Of a DNA stretch of 64,000 nucleotides, positions 27,045 to 37,337 are shown piece by piece (within the stretch, counting starts at the first letter, position 1; each line of letters starts with the position of its first letter). Location: contig CM074810.1 in assembly GCA_037447605.1 (NCBI GenBank), positions 1,150,880 through 1,214,879 of the forward strand, read 5' to 3'. A model generated the notes under the pieces. It saw only the letters and a program-made list of their open reading frames with translations, made no database searches and was not told the DNA's origin. The stretch is from Zygnema circumcarinatum SAG 698-1b (taxonomy: Eukaryota; Plantae; Zygnematophyceae). Made by a program: the position numbers and the translations under genes.

Positions 27045-30000
27045 ATGGCTGCAGCGAGCCGATGCCTATCATCATGTTCTCTTACTGCTCGCTTTTATTC
27101 TCCGGATTCCTCCTTGACAGTTGGCTCTTGTAGGCCTGGGAGTAGTTTGGGAGCTAACTCTTGCTCCATTCGCCAGGGTCTGACGCAAGCGCTAGAACGG
27201 CCGTGTCGGCATCTCATGGCAGGATGCGGCAAAATGCACACTGACTTTGTCCGGGGAAGTTTTGCTGATTTTGAATCATTGTGTGCTCAAAGTGGAAGCA
27301 AGAGATGTCTGCTGCTTGGGCCATCCTTGCGACGCTCTTCAAAGGGAGCCACTAAAGCAATGGTAGGATTTGGGAGACCCGGAAAAGGTCCAGCTGATAT
27401 CATGAAGAAAATGCCATCCTCACTGTCTCCTCCGGGTCTTGGGCAATTTCGCCCTCCAAATTTGCCAGGTCAGTGTGAAAGCTTCTGCCTCTGGTTGTTT
27501 CGCCCATTTTGTAAGCATATACAGGAATCCATTACCGTGAGGGCTCCTTGTAAATAAACTGTAGACGCCTTTGTTGAAAGGCTTCTTTTGATTCTGTATA
27601 TGCTTTTCTATGTATTGCCGTTGATGTGTCGCATTGGGCCGCATGACAATCATCATTCGAGTCATTCAATTCCATTTTTTCTATGAGTCCATTCTCGCAT
27701 GAAAAATTGGTCCAATCTCGCATCTACTAAATGAAACCGAAGTTTCTCGAATCGAAGAAACGCTGCATGCTAGTCACACAGAGGGTTATGGCTCTCTCCT
27801 TTTGGAGCTTCTGTGAATATAACTTGGAAATCAACGAGCAAGCTGTTTGGAGAATCGGCCAGTATCAGCATGGACCACCGTCAAACCCTTTGGATAAACA
27901 CAAATCTTGCTCTTACTTCCTTTCATTCATTCGCGGCACCACCGATAAGACAAAAATAAGTTCCATTCATTTCCTCACATGTTAAAGGACCAAAGCAACT
28001 TCCACCTCGTTGTCTCGTGCTTTTGCAGGTGAAGACTTGCTTTTTGTAAAGACAGAAGGTAATAACATATTCCTTCTATTTCCTTTTGGTTGCAGTTCCT
28101 GGTATGCGGATGCCACCCAATGATAGTCAGCAGGATCAAGCAAGTATTGAGAAGCAAAAGAGGGTGGAGGCTTTGTTGGAGGTCGTAAGGGAAGCGAAGG
28201 GGAGCTGGCAAGAACGTGCTGCTGCAATAAGGTGAACATTACAGCTGCAGAAACAAAAGAAAGAAAAACTCTCTGACGGGGATTCTGTAGTATTAATTGC
28301 ATACCGACAGACAGCTTCGAGCTCTAACCCTGTATATTTTTCTGCATTTTGTTCAATAAGATGAGAACCCCTTTATTAGTGGACTCTCAGATTGTTTGGA
28401 GTCACCACACCTGAGAGATCAAGCCTACTAATGTCTACGAACTTACCATGAACGAAGTCAATCACGTTTAAACTTTTAATGGACTACCTATGGGACACAG
28501 TGAGGCATCTGATCTGGGAAAAAAATTCACCATATGCTTACGTCCCATTAACATGGCTCCAATATCCAACTACTGTCCACTACGACCTAAGTGACCCTGA
28601 CCTTTACTCGTCACAGCGTCTTGTTTTTATGCTTTCGCCGTTCTAGATCATACTTGTCAGAGTGAGAATTATGCATTTGTTCTGTTTTTACGGGTGTGGT
28701 TTATGTGATGTCATCGTTGTCATAAAAAAAAGCTATTCTGGTGAAAGCAGCAGAACTACTTTAGACGTGGGTTGCATCCGTGTAACAATCTACTGGAAAG
28801 AAAAGCCGAGGAGAGCTACATTTGTCGAGGCCCAGCGGCTTCAGGGTTTAGAGGGTTCATGCAGAGTAGTTCACAAAGGTGGGTTGAAGCATGCAACTTG
28901 CAAGCCTTCATATTTGGAGGGCTTCCATGTTGCTGTGGGAGGCAGAGAGCTGCATCAAGATGGAGGATTCACTACTGAAACACTTTATGAGGCCACCCTT
29001 GTATCCTATGACAAGCAGACATCCATGGTGGTTGCGTTGCAGGTGAGCCCTAATGATCATAGCTCAAGCTTGAGATGCAACTCAAGGCTGACTTTATCAA
29101 CATAGAATCGCTCTTAGTCTACGCGCACAAATTGGCTAATCTCGATTGTCGTGTGATAAGATTTCTCGGAAGTTTATTTATTCCACTTTCTATTGGTCTC
29201 ATGTTGGAACTCAGATAAGCTTGTCCATAACTCTGACGTTCAAGGGTGTCTTCATTGTTTGCATTCTCCTCTCCTTTTAGATACGCCAATTCTTATCATA
29301 GAAGATCGCTCCAATTCTTATTATAGAATATCGCTAAGTTGTGAAAGGCTCCCAGCTATAACGCATCGTGTTTCAAGTGACTTGATCACTCGATAAAATG
29401 CAACTTGTCTTTGAGTAATGAGTTTTCAATGATGTCAATACAGTTTTACGACTCAGTGGCAGCAGCCGGCGCTTCTGAAGACTTGCTAACGCAGATTGGG
29501 GAATCACAAATTGAGCTCTTGTATCAGCTGCGAACTCTTTCTGGGCAGCAGCGCCGGGTAAGAATGTATCTTATCTATGAGTATTTGCTGACGTATCCGG
29601 AAAGGCTTACTACATATAAAAAGATCTTGCTGACTGTGAGATCCTGCACGGTGAATGGGGCGTAGTATCTCCCAACCAGCAAGGCAGATACTTTAATCGT
29701 GCATACGAAGCAGTATATACCTTTGGTCTATGGCTGCATATACCAGACAGTGGAGATGCGGCGTGCAGCTGTAGCATCTGCTTGTCTGTCAAACAATTTA
29801 CAAACTGTTTGGTCTGAGGGGTGGTGCAGAGAGCCGTAGAGTATATGCTGGAGACCGGCCTTAATGTGGACGGTGCCCGTGAGTTAGCCAAAGCTATCAA
29901 GGATCACGAACGGCGCCCACAAGGGCGTGAGGTGAGGCTCTCTTCCTCTCTGGAGATTCTGCCATCAGAGGACCATGGGGCTATCTTTAAGGAAGGGATG

Positions 30001-30572: not shown

Positions 30573-31204
30573 GCATGGCTTGAATTTCCGAATGGAAGAT
30601 GGAGTGGTTAGTCGTCTATATGATCATCACCATGTGCTGTATTCAATGGGGGACAAGAAACCATTGTCCCTTGATTTCTTTGATGGGGACAAAGGTCTAA
30701 GGTCTAAGGTTGGAGACAAGCCATGGGTGGCTTAGCGATGACAGTCTGATGAGTCTTACTCTGTATGGTAGGAGGATGGGTGCATGTGAGGGTTAGGGTT
30801 TCAGTTGGAGTTGATCCTGTCCTTAAACCCTAGTTGAACGCATCATCGTAACGGTGTGCCATGCTGGCAATCCATTTATTCCCCCCTGCTGAAGGGGTCT
30901 CGATTTAATAATTTATATCATCTCAAGTAAAGCTCAGGGTAGACAGTATCATGTCGATGTGTTTATTTATTTTTCAAACTTTAAAAATTGTAAACTTACT
31001 TTTATGTCGACAGCCTGCCCGGTGGCCGCTCAGGTGACGGAGGTTGCCCATGTTCATGTCAGCATGCCTAGAGTGGATGAGGAACCGTACAGGGATCCAC
31101 TGCCGTTCAGTGTGCACTGAAGCGCAGATGGGATCATAGGATCAACCGTTGGAATAGTTGAGAACCACGAGGGCTCGGGACCAAACAACGATTGCCAGTG
31201 GTTG

Positions 31205-31520
31205 CGACCCTTGGACTGCGACCCAGCCAACCATTGCTTATGGTTACTACCATTGAATTCCATGGTTGCGAACCATTGGCGTAGGACCCAGCCAACCATT
31301 GCCTATGGTTACAACCATTGGATTCAATGGTTGCGAACCATTGGCGTAGGACCCAGCCAACCATTGCCTATGGTTACAACCATTGGATTCAATGGTTGCG
31401 AACCATTGGCGTAGGGCCCAGTCAACCATTGTCAATGGTCGGAACCATTGGAACCATTTCTGTAGATGCCAGCGGTTTGCCAACCATTCTAATGGTTGAG
31501 AACGTCCAATGGCTAGCCAA
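31205..31520. repeat. Minisatellite with 65-bp unit rich in AACCATTG/CAATGGTT inverted motifs
   Basis: Two identical 65-bp units at 31271-31335 and 31336-31400, plus diverged flanking copies. Confidence 0.92.
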
Positions 31521-31735: not shown

Positions 31736-31927
31736 CCCGGTCAGAGGCGGCTTGACAGGCACCAAGCCCCTCCCTCCCTGGCTCTTTCCCCTCCCTCCCA
31801 CTCCTACCTCCTCTCGCCCACCCTCCCTCTCCTGCTCTCCCTCCCTCCCAGCACAAGTATTGCGGCGCGGCCGCCGCTGCACACTTTTCAGGTTCACACG
31901 TTTCAGGGTATTTTGAAGGCGAAGAAA

Positions 31928-34900
31928 ATGAGGGACTCAGGCGGGCTCGCTGCTGGCGGCGCATTCCTGCTCGGCCTCCTGCTGCTGCTTGAGGCGCCCG
32001 GGAGCTGCTGGCAGTCAGGAAGGAGCGGGATGGCTGCCGCGGAGAATGAGCCGCGTTACGGGAGGGTGGCAGGGAGAGGGCAATGTGAGCACCATCCTTT
32101 CAGTTGTAGCCTTTATCTAGGTGGTGGTGGTAATCTTTTACTTTTGATATTTTCTATTTTTTCTACAAGGGCGTTGTGGAATGACTCTGGAATAACGGAT
32201 TGCCAATTGAACAGGTAGTTTTCCTTTAGTTATTCTTAAGTTTTTCACGGTTTCATTCGTGAAGGGAAGCGTTTTTGCTGTTTGTTAGCATTCCCTGCAT
32301 TCACGTTGACAACATTACCAAACCACTTTAGGAAGGTGGCAGGAAGTGTGAAACGTGGAAATTTTATGTCTACAGTTGCTTTGTTAAGGAAAGGTGCCTT
32401 TTTTTGCTGCTTAGTAGACTTTGGACCCCCCTGAGCACGATATCAGAGCTTCAGTTCTTCTGTAAGGGCGCTAGGAGACCAGCTTCGAGGGTTTTGGGAT
32501 AAAGGACGGTGGTCTTCTGATTTCCTTTCGTTTTTCAAGTAAGAAAGATCCTTCAGTTCGTGATTTTGCTTCTAAAGCTGGCTGTTCCTACATGCAGATT
32601 GGGATTCTGGAGCTTCTGCTGTCTCCTCGTGGAAGAACGTTGCAAGGAGACAGGTAGGAGATATTTGTAGTCTCTGGCTTTCCTGATTTGCACCAGAAAA
32701 TGAAAGGTTTGACCGTTAGACTTCAGCTGGACGCTTTGTGAGATTATTATTGTTGAGTTTATGGCAAGAATTCTTGGCCGGGAGGGCTCAGAATCAAAGA
32801 TTCTATACCATACCAAAGACCTCTGGCGGGGAGGGCTATTGGAGCACAAAAGGCAATCGCATTGTGGATGAGAATGGCGACAAAGTGAGTGCTATAACCT
32901 GTCACTGCTGAAACATAAGAGTTCCAAAATGGAATCGTGAAAATTCACACTTTTCAACAAAACCTGCTTTCTTGCTAGTCTCTCCTTCGCTTTCTTCCGG
33001 AGCTTTGTCAATTTTGTTTTAATCAAGAAATTTTGCTCGTCCTATTCCGCCAATACTTTAGCCCAGCGGATTGCTTTGGTGTAGAACCTTTATAACTTTG
33101 TGCTGCCACTTGTGGGACGCTAGAAGGATGGGCCGTATAGTGCGCAATAATTTGCTGCTTTACACTCTCTCTATCAATGCCTTTGATGACTAAGTTTATC
33201 TGGCCAGTAAAAATCGTTGTCATGGTGAATCAGCGTATAATCGCATTGTCTCTGGTGGCTCAACTCCCCATAGGCAGTTCAGAATAAACCTGCTTTCTGG
33301 TTTTGGCTTATGTGGAAGCTAATCGATCCGGGCTGGGCGAGCAGGTGTATTTTTCAGGAATTAATTGGCAAGGCTTTGAGTATGTGGGCTGCGTCGTTGA
33401 TGGTTTGATGAATCGCTCCATTGATTCACATCTCGACCAGATGTTGGAGTTAGGATTCAACCTGATTCGACTGCCATTCTGTGGCATCTGCATTCAAGAA
33501 GGCGTCTTTCCCACTCCGGGATACATCAACTTGACGTTGAATCCTAACTTAGATGTAGGAGCCTTTCCAAAAACCAGGCTCTGCCGTCTTCCAAACCGGT
33601 CAAAATTCTGCTTTTGCGCACTCCTTTAACACTGAAACCGATGACGTTTAGTCATAGTCTACAGTTGAGGCTCACACCAACAAACGGGTGGAAGCTGGTG
33701 ACTGCAGAATCTGACCAGCATTGAGGTATATTCCGAAGTGGTCAAAAGGGCGGGGCTACGTAACATGAAGGTCATTTTGGATTATCACCGACTGGCACCC
33801 CCTTTTCGGTACGATGAGGAATATGGGTTGTGGTACAATGGCACGTATAACATGGCCTACTTTTTAAGAACGTGGAAGATGGTGGTTACAAGGTTTGTGA
33901 ACGATTCAACAGTTGTTGGGGTGAGTAATCCTCCGCCTCAACTGGCATCTCCTGCTATTCTATGGTGTCCTTGCTTTTGAACTTCGCTGTTCTGGTATGC
34001 AAGGAAACGTCCAAATGTCTTATGTTTGCTACTAGTGTGCTTCTTGTTTGTCAGTTTGACGCTTTCGGTCGTGAGCTTTAGAGTTGGAGTTTGACTATTA
34101 AAGTTCTAGTGAAGTCGGTTTGGAGAGAGAATTCTGGCTGAATAAAGTACATGAGTATTGTGCTCAATAATGGAAAGAAGCTGAAGGTCGATTATGTCTG
34201 CAGTAAGGTTGGTCTGCACGTCGACCTAACGAGTGTCCTTCTTTCCTTTTTCTGGTCGGAACTATTGTTGGTCCTTAATTTACTTTTGGCCTCCAAGTGT
34301 TCAGGCAGCCTGTAATTTTGACCGTCATTGTAGTGCTTCATGTTGTCCTCATCCCGGGAAGCAGATAAGAGAGTTCTCTGACAGATGAAAGTGGGCTTGT
34401 GGTGATGATGAATGTGGGGGAGCAGGTGGATATATTCAATGAACCCCACAATTACAAGGACTACGATGGTCCCTATTGGTTGCCAGATGATCGAGCTCAG
34501 ACGCCACTTCTCAACTGGAGAACAGCAGCGAGAAGGCAAATATGGCCCCTTTCCCTTCCCCACCTAAACAACAAAAGATGGCTGGAAACAATGCTCTACT
34601 TTGAAGAGTAAGAGAGGGAGGCAGGTGGTTCAAGAAGAGTGAACTAACCTGATTCAGTCTTCGTCTGCTTCTGAGCAGGGCTGGAAACCTCATTCTTTCC
34701 ATCAATCCCCACCTGCTCATCTGTGTGCAAGGCTTGTGGAATGGCACCGGATTTGGAGAAAATCTCGAGGGAGTTCGAACTCTGCCGCTTAAACTCAATG
34801 TGAGTGACCAGTGAGCAAGCGAGAGAGGGGGAGAGAGAGAGGGAGAGGGGGAGGGGGCAAAGAGGGCTCTGCGTGCATGAACACCTGCATGCATGCAAGG

Positions 34901-35591
34901 CATTTTTCGTCTCATGTGAGTTTCTTGACGTGTACACAGGTCAAGAATAAGTTGGTCTACTCCATACACGAATATGGCCCGGCACTAAGAGTGCAGCCAT
35001 GGCACAATGAGCTAAATTTTCCAGATAACATGCCTGCATTTTGGGATTATTACTTTGGATACATCCACGACGAAAATATTGCGCCTGTTTGGGTTGGGGA
35101 GTTTGGATCTCTCTACAATCACACGGAATCGGAGAAGAACACGAAAGAGTTGGCGTGGCTGAGATTGTTTGTAGATTACATCCAGTAAGTGCCTTTTTGA
35201 ACCGCTCCTTCCAAGTGATCAGCATTGATCTTTTCAACAATGATGAAACATGAAAGTGTCATTTAATGGTAGTAGCATTTGTTTAGTGCTGTTTTACTTG
35301 TATTGTGAAATGAGAGCGTAAAAAGCTCTTGTGAAGAGCAGAACAGTGGAGCATGTAGTGTGAGGATTCTAACCAAAGTGTAGTTGTGAACTGTTGGGAT
35401 ACAGTAACAAGAGTCTTGTGTGGTCGTGGTTCACATGGTGCCCCAATGCTCAAAACGTGGGAGGCATTCTTTCTCAAGACGATTGGCTCACTCCTCGAGA
35501 AGATAAGCTTACAGAGATTCAGAGCATAATGCATCCCAACTTTGAGTTCCCTGCTCCAATTGCTCCTCCTCCTTCGCCGCCTTTGACGTGA
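31928..35591 (+). CDS. Secreted glycoside hydrolase family 5 endo-1,4-beta-glucanase (cellulase), GH5_1/E1-like; core exons ending 32884, then 33345-33554, 33708-33920, 34426-34535, 34679-34799, 34940-35184, 35405-35591
   Basis: Signal peptide (AFLLGLLLLLEAPGSC); GYWSTKGNRIVDENG, GINWQGFE, GFNLIRLPF, VILDYHR, IFNEPH (acid/base Glu at 34441), WRTAARRAGN-ILSINPHLLI, NKLVYSIHEYG, FPDNMPAFWDYYFGYI, APVWVGEFG (nucleophile Glu at 35099), WSWFTWCPN...GGIL-DDW. N-terminal exon joins (32065-32780) unresolved. Confidence 0.93.
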
Positions 35592-35687
35592 GCTCTCTCC
35601 CACCTTGTTGCCTTCTCGGAACTATGCGCCTCCCAAACGTACTGCTTTAGTAGGAAGGTTGTAATACTGTTCTGAACAGAACTGTTG

Positions 35688-35744
35688 CTCAGTTCTGTTG
35701 CTCAGTTTTGTTGCTCAGTTCTGTTGCTCAGTTCTGTTGCTCAG
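35688..35744. repeat. 13-bp tandem repeat (CTCAGTTCTGTTG) x4 plus a partial copy
   Basis: Directly visible, about 100 bp downstream of the GH5 stop. Confidence 0.9.
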
Positions 35745-37337
35745 AAGGTTGTCTGCCTCCACTCCGCTTCTGTGCTTGCAGCCCTCCGCTTCCACCAGCA
35801 AGCCCTTTGTTTTTGCAAACTCCGCAAACCGGCGGCGTACTTGCCCCCATTGGATACTCTCCTCCTGCTCTTGCCGACTCGCCTCCGCCGCCTTCTAGGG
35901 CAACCCGAGGAAGCGTTCAAAAACTCACCTCTTTGGTGGTTTTCATGCTGCCCACCTTGTGCCTCTTTATTGGTCTTATTTAATTTGCTGGTCAGATTGC
36001 AATAAGGGAAAGTTTCTCCTGACAGAGAGGCAGGCAGCCCCTGACACAAGGTGGTGCGTAAGTTAGTTGATCGCTCTGAATAAGGCCAACGAGGGAGCGT
36101 ATTTGGATGGAACATTTTCCTTGCCAGGTGCAGTAGTGGCGAGGCTTGAGGAAAGCCTGGGAATGGATTCAATACTGCTGTTTTTATTTATTTCTAGCGG
36201 CGAAGTTCTTGGGGCCCTGCTCTGCTCTGCCTCTGCTCCTTTCACTGTGATTTGTGAAGTGAAGCTGATTAGCGGAGTACGGTACAGGATAAGTTTGGAA
36301 CAGCACAAGCGTTTCGCTTGGATCTCAAGGCTCCCTGTGTCATCATTTCCTTTTTTTGTTTTTTTAGAGTGAAGTGTCCATGTACATTGCCATCGTGAGA
36401 TCAAGGCCCATTCTTTCTCGTTGTGATGCTTGAAATGTATAAGGTTGTGTCCGCGTTGCTCTCCTGGTCCATCATGCATTGTTTATCTTCAAGGGATCTT
36501 CAAGAAGAAAAGAAAACACGAGAAAAAAGTCCTTGAATTAGAATTCAAAACCGCTGATCGAAAGATTATGAAAAGACCCAAAATCGGAAGGAATTGAGAG
36601 TCGCAATTTTCGGGTATAAAAGGTTTATATTATCTGATCGAGAGAGAGAGGGAGTTGGGGAGAGCGAGGAAGGAGAAGTGACTGAACGAGAAGGGGGAGA
36701 GTGAGAGGGCGAAGAAGAGAGACCGCGAAAGGGACCATGGGAGAGAGAGAGACAAGAGAGGGAGAGAAGGAGCGAGAGAGACAGAGAGAGAGGAGCAAGA
36801 GAGCTATAGACAAGGAGAGACAGAGAACGAGAGAGAGAGGCCAACCTTACCCTCTTTCCCGAGCTCGAACGTGGCCCTCTCCCGCACGAACACCTTTTTC
36901 TCGATACGCGCGATTTACCTCGATAGAAGACATTTGATATCTGCATCCGATATTACATACAAAATCGATACGAAACGATAATATACGATATACACGATAC
37001 GGTGCGATACGATACAGTTCTCCCACAGTCTCCCTCCCTCCCAGTCCCCACACGCTGTGCAGCTCATTCGATTTTTCTCCCCCGGCTCACTCGCGTTTCT
37101 GTCGGCCGGCCACAATTTCCGGCCGGCGGTCGCCGTCCGGCAGACTCCTGGAGAGCCTGGCAGGCAGCAATGTGCAGTGCAGGGCTTGCTATTTCGCTCT
37201 CACAGTGAGGGAGGGAGGGAGGGAGGGAAGGAAGTGGGAGGAGCAGCGCCCATGGCGGGTTCGCAGGACTAGGAAGGAAGGCTGTAGGAGCGCAGTGGAA
37301 ATGAGGGGCCTGCGACGGGCGGGAGCTTCAAAGGAAG

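Follow-up and report, generated by a model that had tools for sequence, protein, structure and literature searches.

An expressed GH5_1 gene in the alga Zygnema circumcarinatum, probably acquired from a planctomycete-related bacterium

Gene structure and transcription

The stretch of DNA considered here, hereafter the window, comprises 64,000 nucleotides of contig CM074810.1 (assembly GCA_037447605.1, positions 1,150,880 to 1,214,879 of the forward strand) of the zygnematophycean alga Zygnema circumcarinatum SAG 698-1b. At 31928-35983 of the window, on the plus strand, lies a gene for a protein of glycoside hydrolase family 5, subfamily 1 (GH5_1), whose horizontal transfer from bacteria is well supported and whose later history and likely function are discussed below. 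The gene, of 10 exons and 9 introns, was spliced manually and then confirmed by RNA evidence, namely Logan contigs from four sequencing runs, belonging to two studies, of the source organism. All nine splice junctions are present in the RNA contigs of these runs, one transcript of about 2 kb carries exactly the nine junctions, and read depth is 80-480 in the exons as against 0-15 in the introns. The gene is real and expressed, and its reading as a pseudogene was rejected.

The initial annotation of the window, made from the sequence alone, had described a gene split by at least seven spliceosomal introns, ending at 35591 and encoding a short Pro-rich tail. The split by spliceosomal introns was borne out, with nine of them in RNA instead of the number then given, and the 3' part of the gene had to be redrawn. 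The TGA at 35589-35591 sits inside intron 9, the donor of which (between 35587 and 35588) joins 35782 in all four runs (junction 35587>35782), and the reading frame continues to the true stop, the TAA at 35981-35983. The spliced protein is 529 amino acids long, compared with 463 for a stop at 35591, and what had been taken for a short tail is a Pro-rich linker of about 60 residues followed by a C-terminal hydrophobic segment, the tail of the orthologue P0001/P0265 being alike.

The RNA contigs start at 31781-31839 and define a CT-rich 5' untranslated region (31781-31927). Exon 1 (31928-32084, residues 1-53) contains the ATG, the signal-peptide-like stretch AFLLGLLLLL and the first part of an N-terminal extension that is not conserved, and leads through the RNA junction 32084>32598 to exon 2 (32598-32653, residues 53-71); this exon and exon 3 (32792-32884, residues 72-102), in which the GH5 domain begins (GEGYWSTKGNRIVD), are both delimited by RNA junctions. 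Exon 4 (33345-33554, residues 103-172) encodes the motifs GINWQGFE and IRLPF, with W110 and R144, and matches E1 and EGPh in the PDB at 2e-9, and exon 5 (33708-33920, residues 173-243) encodes ILDYHR, with H199, and matches PF00150 at 2.3e-5 and CelE2 in the PDB at 1e-8. Exon 6 (34426-34535, residues 244-280), with the FNEPH motif containing N248 and the acid/base E249, is followed by intron 6 (34536-34678), an RNA-confirmed GC-AG intron in which the exonic AAG is followed by GCAAAT. Exon 7 (34679-34799, residues 280-320) is again delimited by RNA junctions, exon 8 (34940-35184, residues 321-402) encodes HEY (H330, Y332) and VGEFG with the nucleophile E374 and matches E1 in the PDB at 2e-17, and exon 9 (35405-35587, residues 402-463) holds the end of the GH5 domain (FTWCPN...GGILSQDDW, with W413) and the beginning of the Pro-rich linker. 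The remainder of the linker and the hydrophobic end, which resembles a glycosylphosphatidylinositol (GPI) signal, are encoded by exon 10 (35782-35983, residues 463-529 and the TAA), and the 3' untranslated region is placed at 35984-36400, with RNA contigs extending beyond 36400.

Repeats occur in and near the transcribed region. A CT-rich stretch with a CCCT-type repeat (31768-31849) overlaps the transcript start, a 65-bp tandem repeat of 3.9 copies and 91% identity (31199-31452) is found 300-600 bp upstream of it, and a 13-bp tandem repeat (CTGTTGCTCAGTT, 4.8 copies) occupies 35682-35744 within intron 9.

Protein architecture

The initial proposal of a signal peptide agrees with the hydropathy profile, which reveals a hydrophobic, signal-peptide-like segment at residues 1 to about 27 (hydropathy 2.5 over 12 amino acids). 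It is followed by the non-conserved N-terminal extension (residues ~28-83), by the GH5 domain (residues 84 to ~444), which contains eight N-X-S/T sequons, and by the linker, which is 26% Pro. The protein ends in PSRATRGSVQK-LTSLVVFMLPTLCLFIGLI, where the last 19 residues (LTSLVVFMLPTLCLFIGLI) are hydrophobic with nothing charged after them, and the small residues S-R-A are placed 7-9 residues upstream of this terminal segment. In sequence, the C-terminal tail looks like a GPI-attachment signal. By hydropathy and inspection, linker and hydrophobic tail were recognised in 6/6 proteins of the algal branch to which the window gene belongs (branch II, below), including P0265, P0152, P0154, P0057 and P0051, and in none of the other branch (branch I).

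A C-terminal tether of another type is predicted for the planctomycete-type relatives. These proteins (P0157, encoded at L002:6001-7317, P0159, P0161, P0164 and P0281) have a C-terminus in which a Gly-rich linker is followed by a Cys motif (GCG or CGxxGxEA), then a hydrophobic helix and finally an Arg-rich tail, an arrangement that resembles a bacterial sorting signal, and no NCBIfam model matches this C-terminal motif.

Family assignment and catalytic residues

Searched singly against PF00150 (curated cut-off 23.5 bits), exons 5 and 8 passed with 24.5 and 39.4 bits, respectively, and exon 4 gave a weak match; the precomputed annotation of all full-length relatives also includes PF00150. Four exons searched singly against the PDB matched only E1-type endoglucanases (1ECE/1VRX, EGPh, CelE2 and the Xanthomonas enzyme). 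Exon 6 alone, a query of 36 amino acids and too short for this purpose, found no PDB match, and E249 was placed via alignments. The orthologue P0265, which shares 66% identity with the window protein in BLASTP and about 70% over trimmed catalytic-domain columns, matched only Acidothermus cellulolyticus E1 (Cel5A; 1e-66), CelE2, Pyrococcus EGPh and the Xanthomonas endoglucanase in the PDB at E<=0.001, and structures of GH5_2, GH5_4, GH5_5 or GH5_7 were absent at this threshold. The EGPh structure 2ZUN is the PDB representative of GH5_1 (Aspeborg 2012). Judged from these matches and the 2ZUN reference, the window protein belongs to GH5 subfamily 1, and its fold is settled because the sequence matches E1.

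The (β/α)8 domain of E1 aligns end to end with the orthologue, over E1 residues 3-347 including N161/E162 and E282, and exon 8 of the window gene aligns directly with E1 residues 229-302, including H238, Y240 and E282. Residues were located by motif, exon 8 being compared directly with E1 and the other motifs through P0265. Both catalytic glutamates are kept, E249 in FNEPH (34441-34443) and E374 in VGEFG (35099-35101), as are all eight residues mapped to the E1 conserved set (R144, H199, N248, E249, H330, Y332, E374 and W413); in terms of E1 numbering, N161/E162, H238/Y240, E282, W42 and W319 are conserved in the window protein or its orthologue. The cleft loop differs, in that YWWGGNL of E1 corresponds to GFGENL in the window protein and the aromatic WW is replaced by GF. 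Further differences from the bacterial E1 are the nine introns, the putative eukaryotic signal peptide, the eight sequons, the Pro-rich stalk and the GPI-like tail. The complete GH5 domain with both catalytic glutamates that had been noted at the outset was thus recovered by PF00150 and the E1-type PDB matches.

Plant cellulases belong to GH9, and the initial annotation had likened the protein to the Acidothermus E1 and Xanthomonas GH5_1 enzymes in preference to plant GH5_7, GH5_11 and GH5_14. The PDB matches of P0265 bear out this likeness, and no plant GH5_7, GH5_11 or GH5_14 protein was returned by any of the sequence searches. With the algal proteins as queries, NCBIfam gave only a spurious weak endoglycoceramidase match, and a feature search of the ESM Atlas gave only generic fungal GH5 clusters with scores <=0.90, which added nothing.

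Relatives and phylogeny

Relatives were collected by an exhaustive phmmer search with exon 8 and by two word-indexed searches, one of which used the orthologue and the other an algal alignment. Three groups were found, namely algal-looking proteins, a large bacterial set and fungal GH5_1-like proteins placed elsewhere in the tree. In the first group, Logan-assembled transcripts without interruptions gave P0001/P0265, P0152, P0154, P0153 and P0279, and a EukProt transcriptome gave P0051; P0169 is encoded on an environmental contig on which a signal peptide lies upstream in the same frame and the untranslated ends are long. The only named eukaryotes close to the window gene are several Closterium strains and Mesotaenium endlicherianum, whose proteins (CLOM_g5787/GJP46510, CAI5461568 and ME000246S04152) are annotated just as 'hypothetical' or 'unnamed'; in the word-indexed searches, where many matches are nameless, the named matches comprised only Closterium, Mesotaenium and a separately placed fungus. 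No land-plant or chlorophyte protein was retrieved by phmmer with exon 8 or by the word-indexed searches. Between the window gene and the orthologue transcript, non-synonymous divergence (dN) is 0.34 and synonymous divergence (dS) is saturated.

The nearest bacterial relatives are Planctomycetota-type GH5_1 proteins (among them P0157, P0159/L003, P0161/L004 and P0198), which are 45-47% identical to the window protein, compared with 40-41% for the Closterium and Mesotaenium proteins. Many of these bacterial proteins also appear to be tethered C-terminally. They differ from the algal gene in being intron-free and of 66-69% GC, in the CBM6/CBM35-like or PKD modules that many carry, and in a tail that is sorting-signal-like and not GPI-like. 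The Closterium and Mesotaenium proteins, despite the lower identity, belong to the same family, and the Closterium genes have introns at positions also occupied in the window gene; linker and hydrophobic tail recur in Closterium P0057, and the Mesotaenium protein and Closterium P0282 fall in the tail-less paralogue branch.

In a FastTree overview of 233 rows, the algal rows lay within a clade of 45 with 100% support, and in the maximum-likelihood (ML) trees obtained with IQ-TREE under LG+C20 PMSF, of 83 and of 75 rows, the joint algal and planctomycete-type clade was supported at 100/100 each time. The 75-row tree resolved a bacterial sister clade (98/95), all five taxon-named members of which are Planctomycetota (L003, L004, P0198, P0199 and P0286), and a single clade of ten algal rows (91/86). 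Within the latter, branch I (99/91) unites P0153, P0279, Mesotaenium and Closterium P0282, proteins that stop right after the domain, and branch II (98/93) unites Closterium P0057, the window protein with P0001, P0051, and P0152 with P0154, which carry linker and hydrophobic tail. Outside the joint clade stand cyanobacterial, actinobacterial, Chloroflexota, Bacillota, proteobacterial and other planctomycete GH5_1 proteins, so that the remaining GH5_1 lineages in the ML trees are all bacterial except for two separately placed fungal-type rows. The bacterial transfer put forward in the initial annotation is therefore upheld, the algal copies lying within bacterial GH5_1 beside the Planctomycetota-type clade, with nearest donors that are planctomycete-like and not Acidothermus or Xanthomonas. 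The window gene grouped with the algal copies in the ML trees, and a grouping with land-plant or chlorophyte GH5 did not appear.

The tail-less paralogues P0153 and P0279 (L085 and L090) come from one sample, ERR12684111, and the P0153 transcript has 68% GC; this composition and the presence of two paralogues in one sample suggest that the branch I gene was duplicated again in a GC-rich alga.

Shared introns and host integration

The exact exon maps of two Closterium genes, one from each branch, were rebuilt from their genomic loci. P0057 has four introns, three of which match introns 4 (phase 0), 6 (phase 2) and 8 (phase 2) of the window gene at the same alignment column, and P0282 has two introns, both of which correspond in the same way to introns 3 (phase 0) and 6 (phase 2) of the window gene. 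Intron 6 thus occupies a site common to the window gene, P0057 and P0282, i.e. to both branches, with a GT donor in both Closterium paralogues as opposed to the GC donor of the window gene. Overall, 5/6 Closterium introns coincide with window introns in position and phase, which, among about 1000 possible sites, is far beyond chance. The shared introns point to a single old acquisition, and the simplest history is one acquisition and early intron gain followed by duplication into secreted and anchored forms, in which case acquisition, intron gain and duplication would all predate the divergence of Closterium and Z. circumcarinatum.

The gene is embedded in host-like sequence. Its coding GC (49.7%) and the GC of its third codon positions (GC3, 53%) are the same as those of neighbouring genes, as against the 66-69% GC of planctomycete genes. 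The neighbours within the 64-kb window are intron-bearing genes of the green lineage and include a DUF538 gene, an intron-split GRAS gene and a CBF/Mak21 gene, in agreement with the ordinary plant flanks described initially, together with a weak Raf1-like open reading frame. The latter (28662-29102, just upstream of the GH5 gene) matches the helix-turn-helix of Raf1 (Rubisco accumulation factor 1) below the Pfam cut-off. The window contains one GH5 copy, and a reading as a tandem duplicate was rejected on this ground. The Closterium orthologues with common introns are situated on contigs of 0.9-1.5 Mb.

Discussion

It is probable that a single uptake, early in the lineage comprising Closterium, Mesotaenium and Z. 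circumcarinatum, brought in an ancestor of the gene from a bacterial relative of an extant Planctomycetota clade, and that the gene later acquired spliceosomal introns and a host-like composition and was duplicated. One branch would have remained a plain secreted enzyme, and in the other, to which the window gene belongs, the Pro-rich linker and a GPI-type attachment signal at the C-terminus would have been added, the product being a secreted GH5_1 endo-β-1,4-glucanase. The signal peptide would direct the protein into the endoplasmic reticulum, where the hydrophobic tail could be exchanged for a GPI anchor, and the enzyme would then be held at the outside of the plasma membrane by a flexible and probably glycosylated stalk. 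There, E249 as acid/base and E374 as nucleophile would cleave β-1,4-glucan of the alga's own wall by a retaining mechanism during growth, division or wall turnover. We infer the substrate, the GPI anchoring, the wall-remodelling role and any identity of the donor beyond 'planctomycete-like'. By family, the activity is most likely that of an endo-β-1,4-glucanase, and the most likely site of action is the outer plasma-membrane face or the wall. The most likely role is the remodelling of the alga's own β-glucan wall in a KORRIGAN-like mode. KORRIGAN, which the supplement of PMC11096116 treats in connection with Zygnema, is a plasma-membrane endo-1,4-β-glucanase facing the wall, and the likeness is a functional analogy only: the plant enzyme is an inverting GH9 member, unrelated in family and fold, has an N-terminal type II anchor and is vertically inherited in plants.

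Several points weigh against this account. The sampled planctomycete clade has the algal clade as its sister group and does not enclose it, so the true donor would be unsampled or older; the long-branched environmental protein P0169 floats in the tree; and in the approximately unbiased (AU) test a topology that separates branch II from branch I and places it with the bacteria costs only 6.2 log-likelihood units with p-AU 0.37. As the constraint of all 11 algal rows into one clade is not rejected either (p-AU 0.50), the protein tree alone leaves one versus two origins unsettled. The evidence for absence from land plants comes from a word-indexed search, and the restriction to Zygnematophyceae depends on three named taxa. 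The C-terminal anchor could be a plain C-terminal transmembrane segment, and the loss of WW in the cleft loop may mean that substrate preference differs from that of E1. Two or more separate transfers, by which the anchored branch (window gene, P0001, P0152/P0154 and Closterium P0057) and the secreted branch (Mesotaenium, P0153, P0279 and Closterium P0282) derive independently from planctomycete-like donors related to one another, would fit the topology left standing by the AU test, the support of just 91/86 for algal monophyly and the similarity of the window protein, which is slightly higher with planctomycete proteins than with those of Closterium and Mesotaenium. Such a history is nevertheless improbable, since both introns of the branch I gene P0282 lie at the column and phase of window introns 3 and 6, the second of these positions is common to both branches, and independent gain at identical sites, with about 9 sites of >1000 possible for each intron, is very unlikely. 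Somewhat more improbable still is vertical inheritance of an ancient eukaryotic or plastid-derived GH5_1 gene that was lost nearly everywhere else in Archaeplastida; the sister position of the algal clade and the occurrence of GH5_1 genes in cyanobacteria would agree with it, but the cyanobacterial proteins are distant in the tree with a strongly supported placement away from the algal clade, no named eukaryote other than Closterium and Mesotaenium was found near that clade in the word-indexed searches, and many independent losses would be required. Bacterial contamination or misassembly, for which nothing speaks except the bacterial affinity of the protein, has next to no chance of being correct and was rejected in view of the nine introns spliced in RNA, the host-matching GC, the eukaryotic neighbours on one 64-kb stretch and the Closterium orthologues on long contigs with common introns; the initial judgement that contamination was unlikely can accordingly be put more strongly.

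GH5_1 consists of extracellular enzymes of archaea, bacteria and symbiotic protists, and 22/24 characterised members are endoglucanases, the subfamily also including one licheninase and one enzyme that cleaves glucomannan as well (Aspeborg et al. 2012). These two activities, together with the replacement of WW by GF in the cleft loop and the possibility that a membrane-tethered enzyme faces outward as a defence, leave some room for the same gene, of the same origin, to serve another purpose, as a glucanase or transglycosylase of mixed-linkage glucan, xyloglucan or mannan, as an enzyme against foreign walls (of oomycetes or other algae) or in polysaccharide scavenging. This is a minority possibility, set against the prevalence of endo-1,4-glucanases among characterised members, the retention of 8/8 mapped E1 residues, the high and steady expression in four of four runs and the old, conserved anchored/secreted pair, with which a housekeeping wall role fits better. 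As for the tether itself, it may derive directly from the C-terminal sorting helix of the donor, reused as a GPI-attachment signal, an idea that we regard as unlikely.

Genes gained from bacteria are considered to have shaped the walls of the algae nearest to land plants. To our knowledge, most such cases of algal gene gain rest on tree shape alone. The present case, a solid but unsurprising addition to the known bacterial gene gains in algal relatives of land plants, adds a verified gene model, transcription, and intron positions common to distant species and paralogues, which together imply that the gain predates an old duplication and exclude contamination. Its most useful new details are the anchored/secreted paralogue pair and the shared introns. 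It would also illustrate how a bacterial secreted enzyme can be refitted for display on a eukaryotic surface by means of a predicted signal peptide, glycosylated Pro-rich stalk and GPI-type tail. Closterium is genetically manipulable, so that the role of the enzyme in wall growth or division is accessible there.

For streptophyte algae, phylogenies suggestive of horizontal gain of bacterial carbohydrate-active enzymes have been reported for GH5_7, GH16_20, GH43_24 and others (Feng et al. 2024, PMC11096116). Those cases are similar in concerning wall-degrading enzymes with a suggested horizontal transfer into streptophyte algae and differ in that GH5_1 is not among the subfamilies given or discussed there. 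More generally, no description of a GH5_1 family in Zygnematophyceae was found in the searchable literature, where the discussions of transfer and cellulases that were found concern GH5_7 and GH5_14, and in the Zygnema, Spirogyra and Penium genome papers and other papers found GH5_7, GH5_14 and GH9 are discussed and GH5_1 is not. The gene adds GH5_1, a cellulase family that, as far as the searchable literature shows, is otherwise unreported from plants.

Other GH5_1-like proteins

The searches also returned GH5_1-like proteins of other architectures. The fungal-type proteins P0306 and P0300-P0302, one from Umbelopsis with a CBM1 and others with a PF02013 module, occupy another region of the tree and are probably separate eukaryotic acquisitions. 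P0151, a metagenomic protein of 818 amino acids, consists of two near-identical GH5_1 domains in tandem, and the Azospirillum protein P0002, of 2827 amino acids, contains three GH5 stretches.

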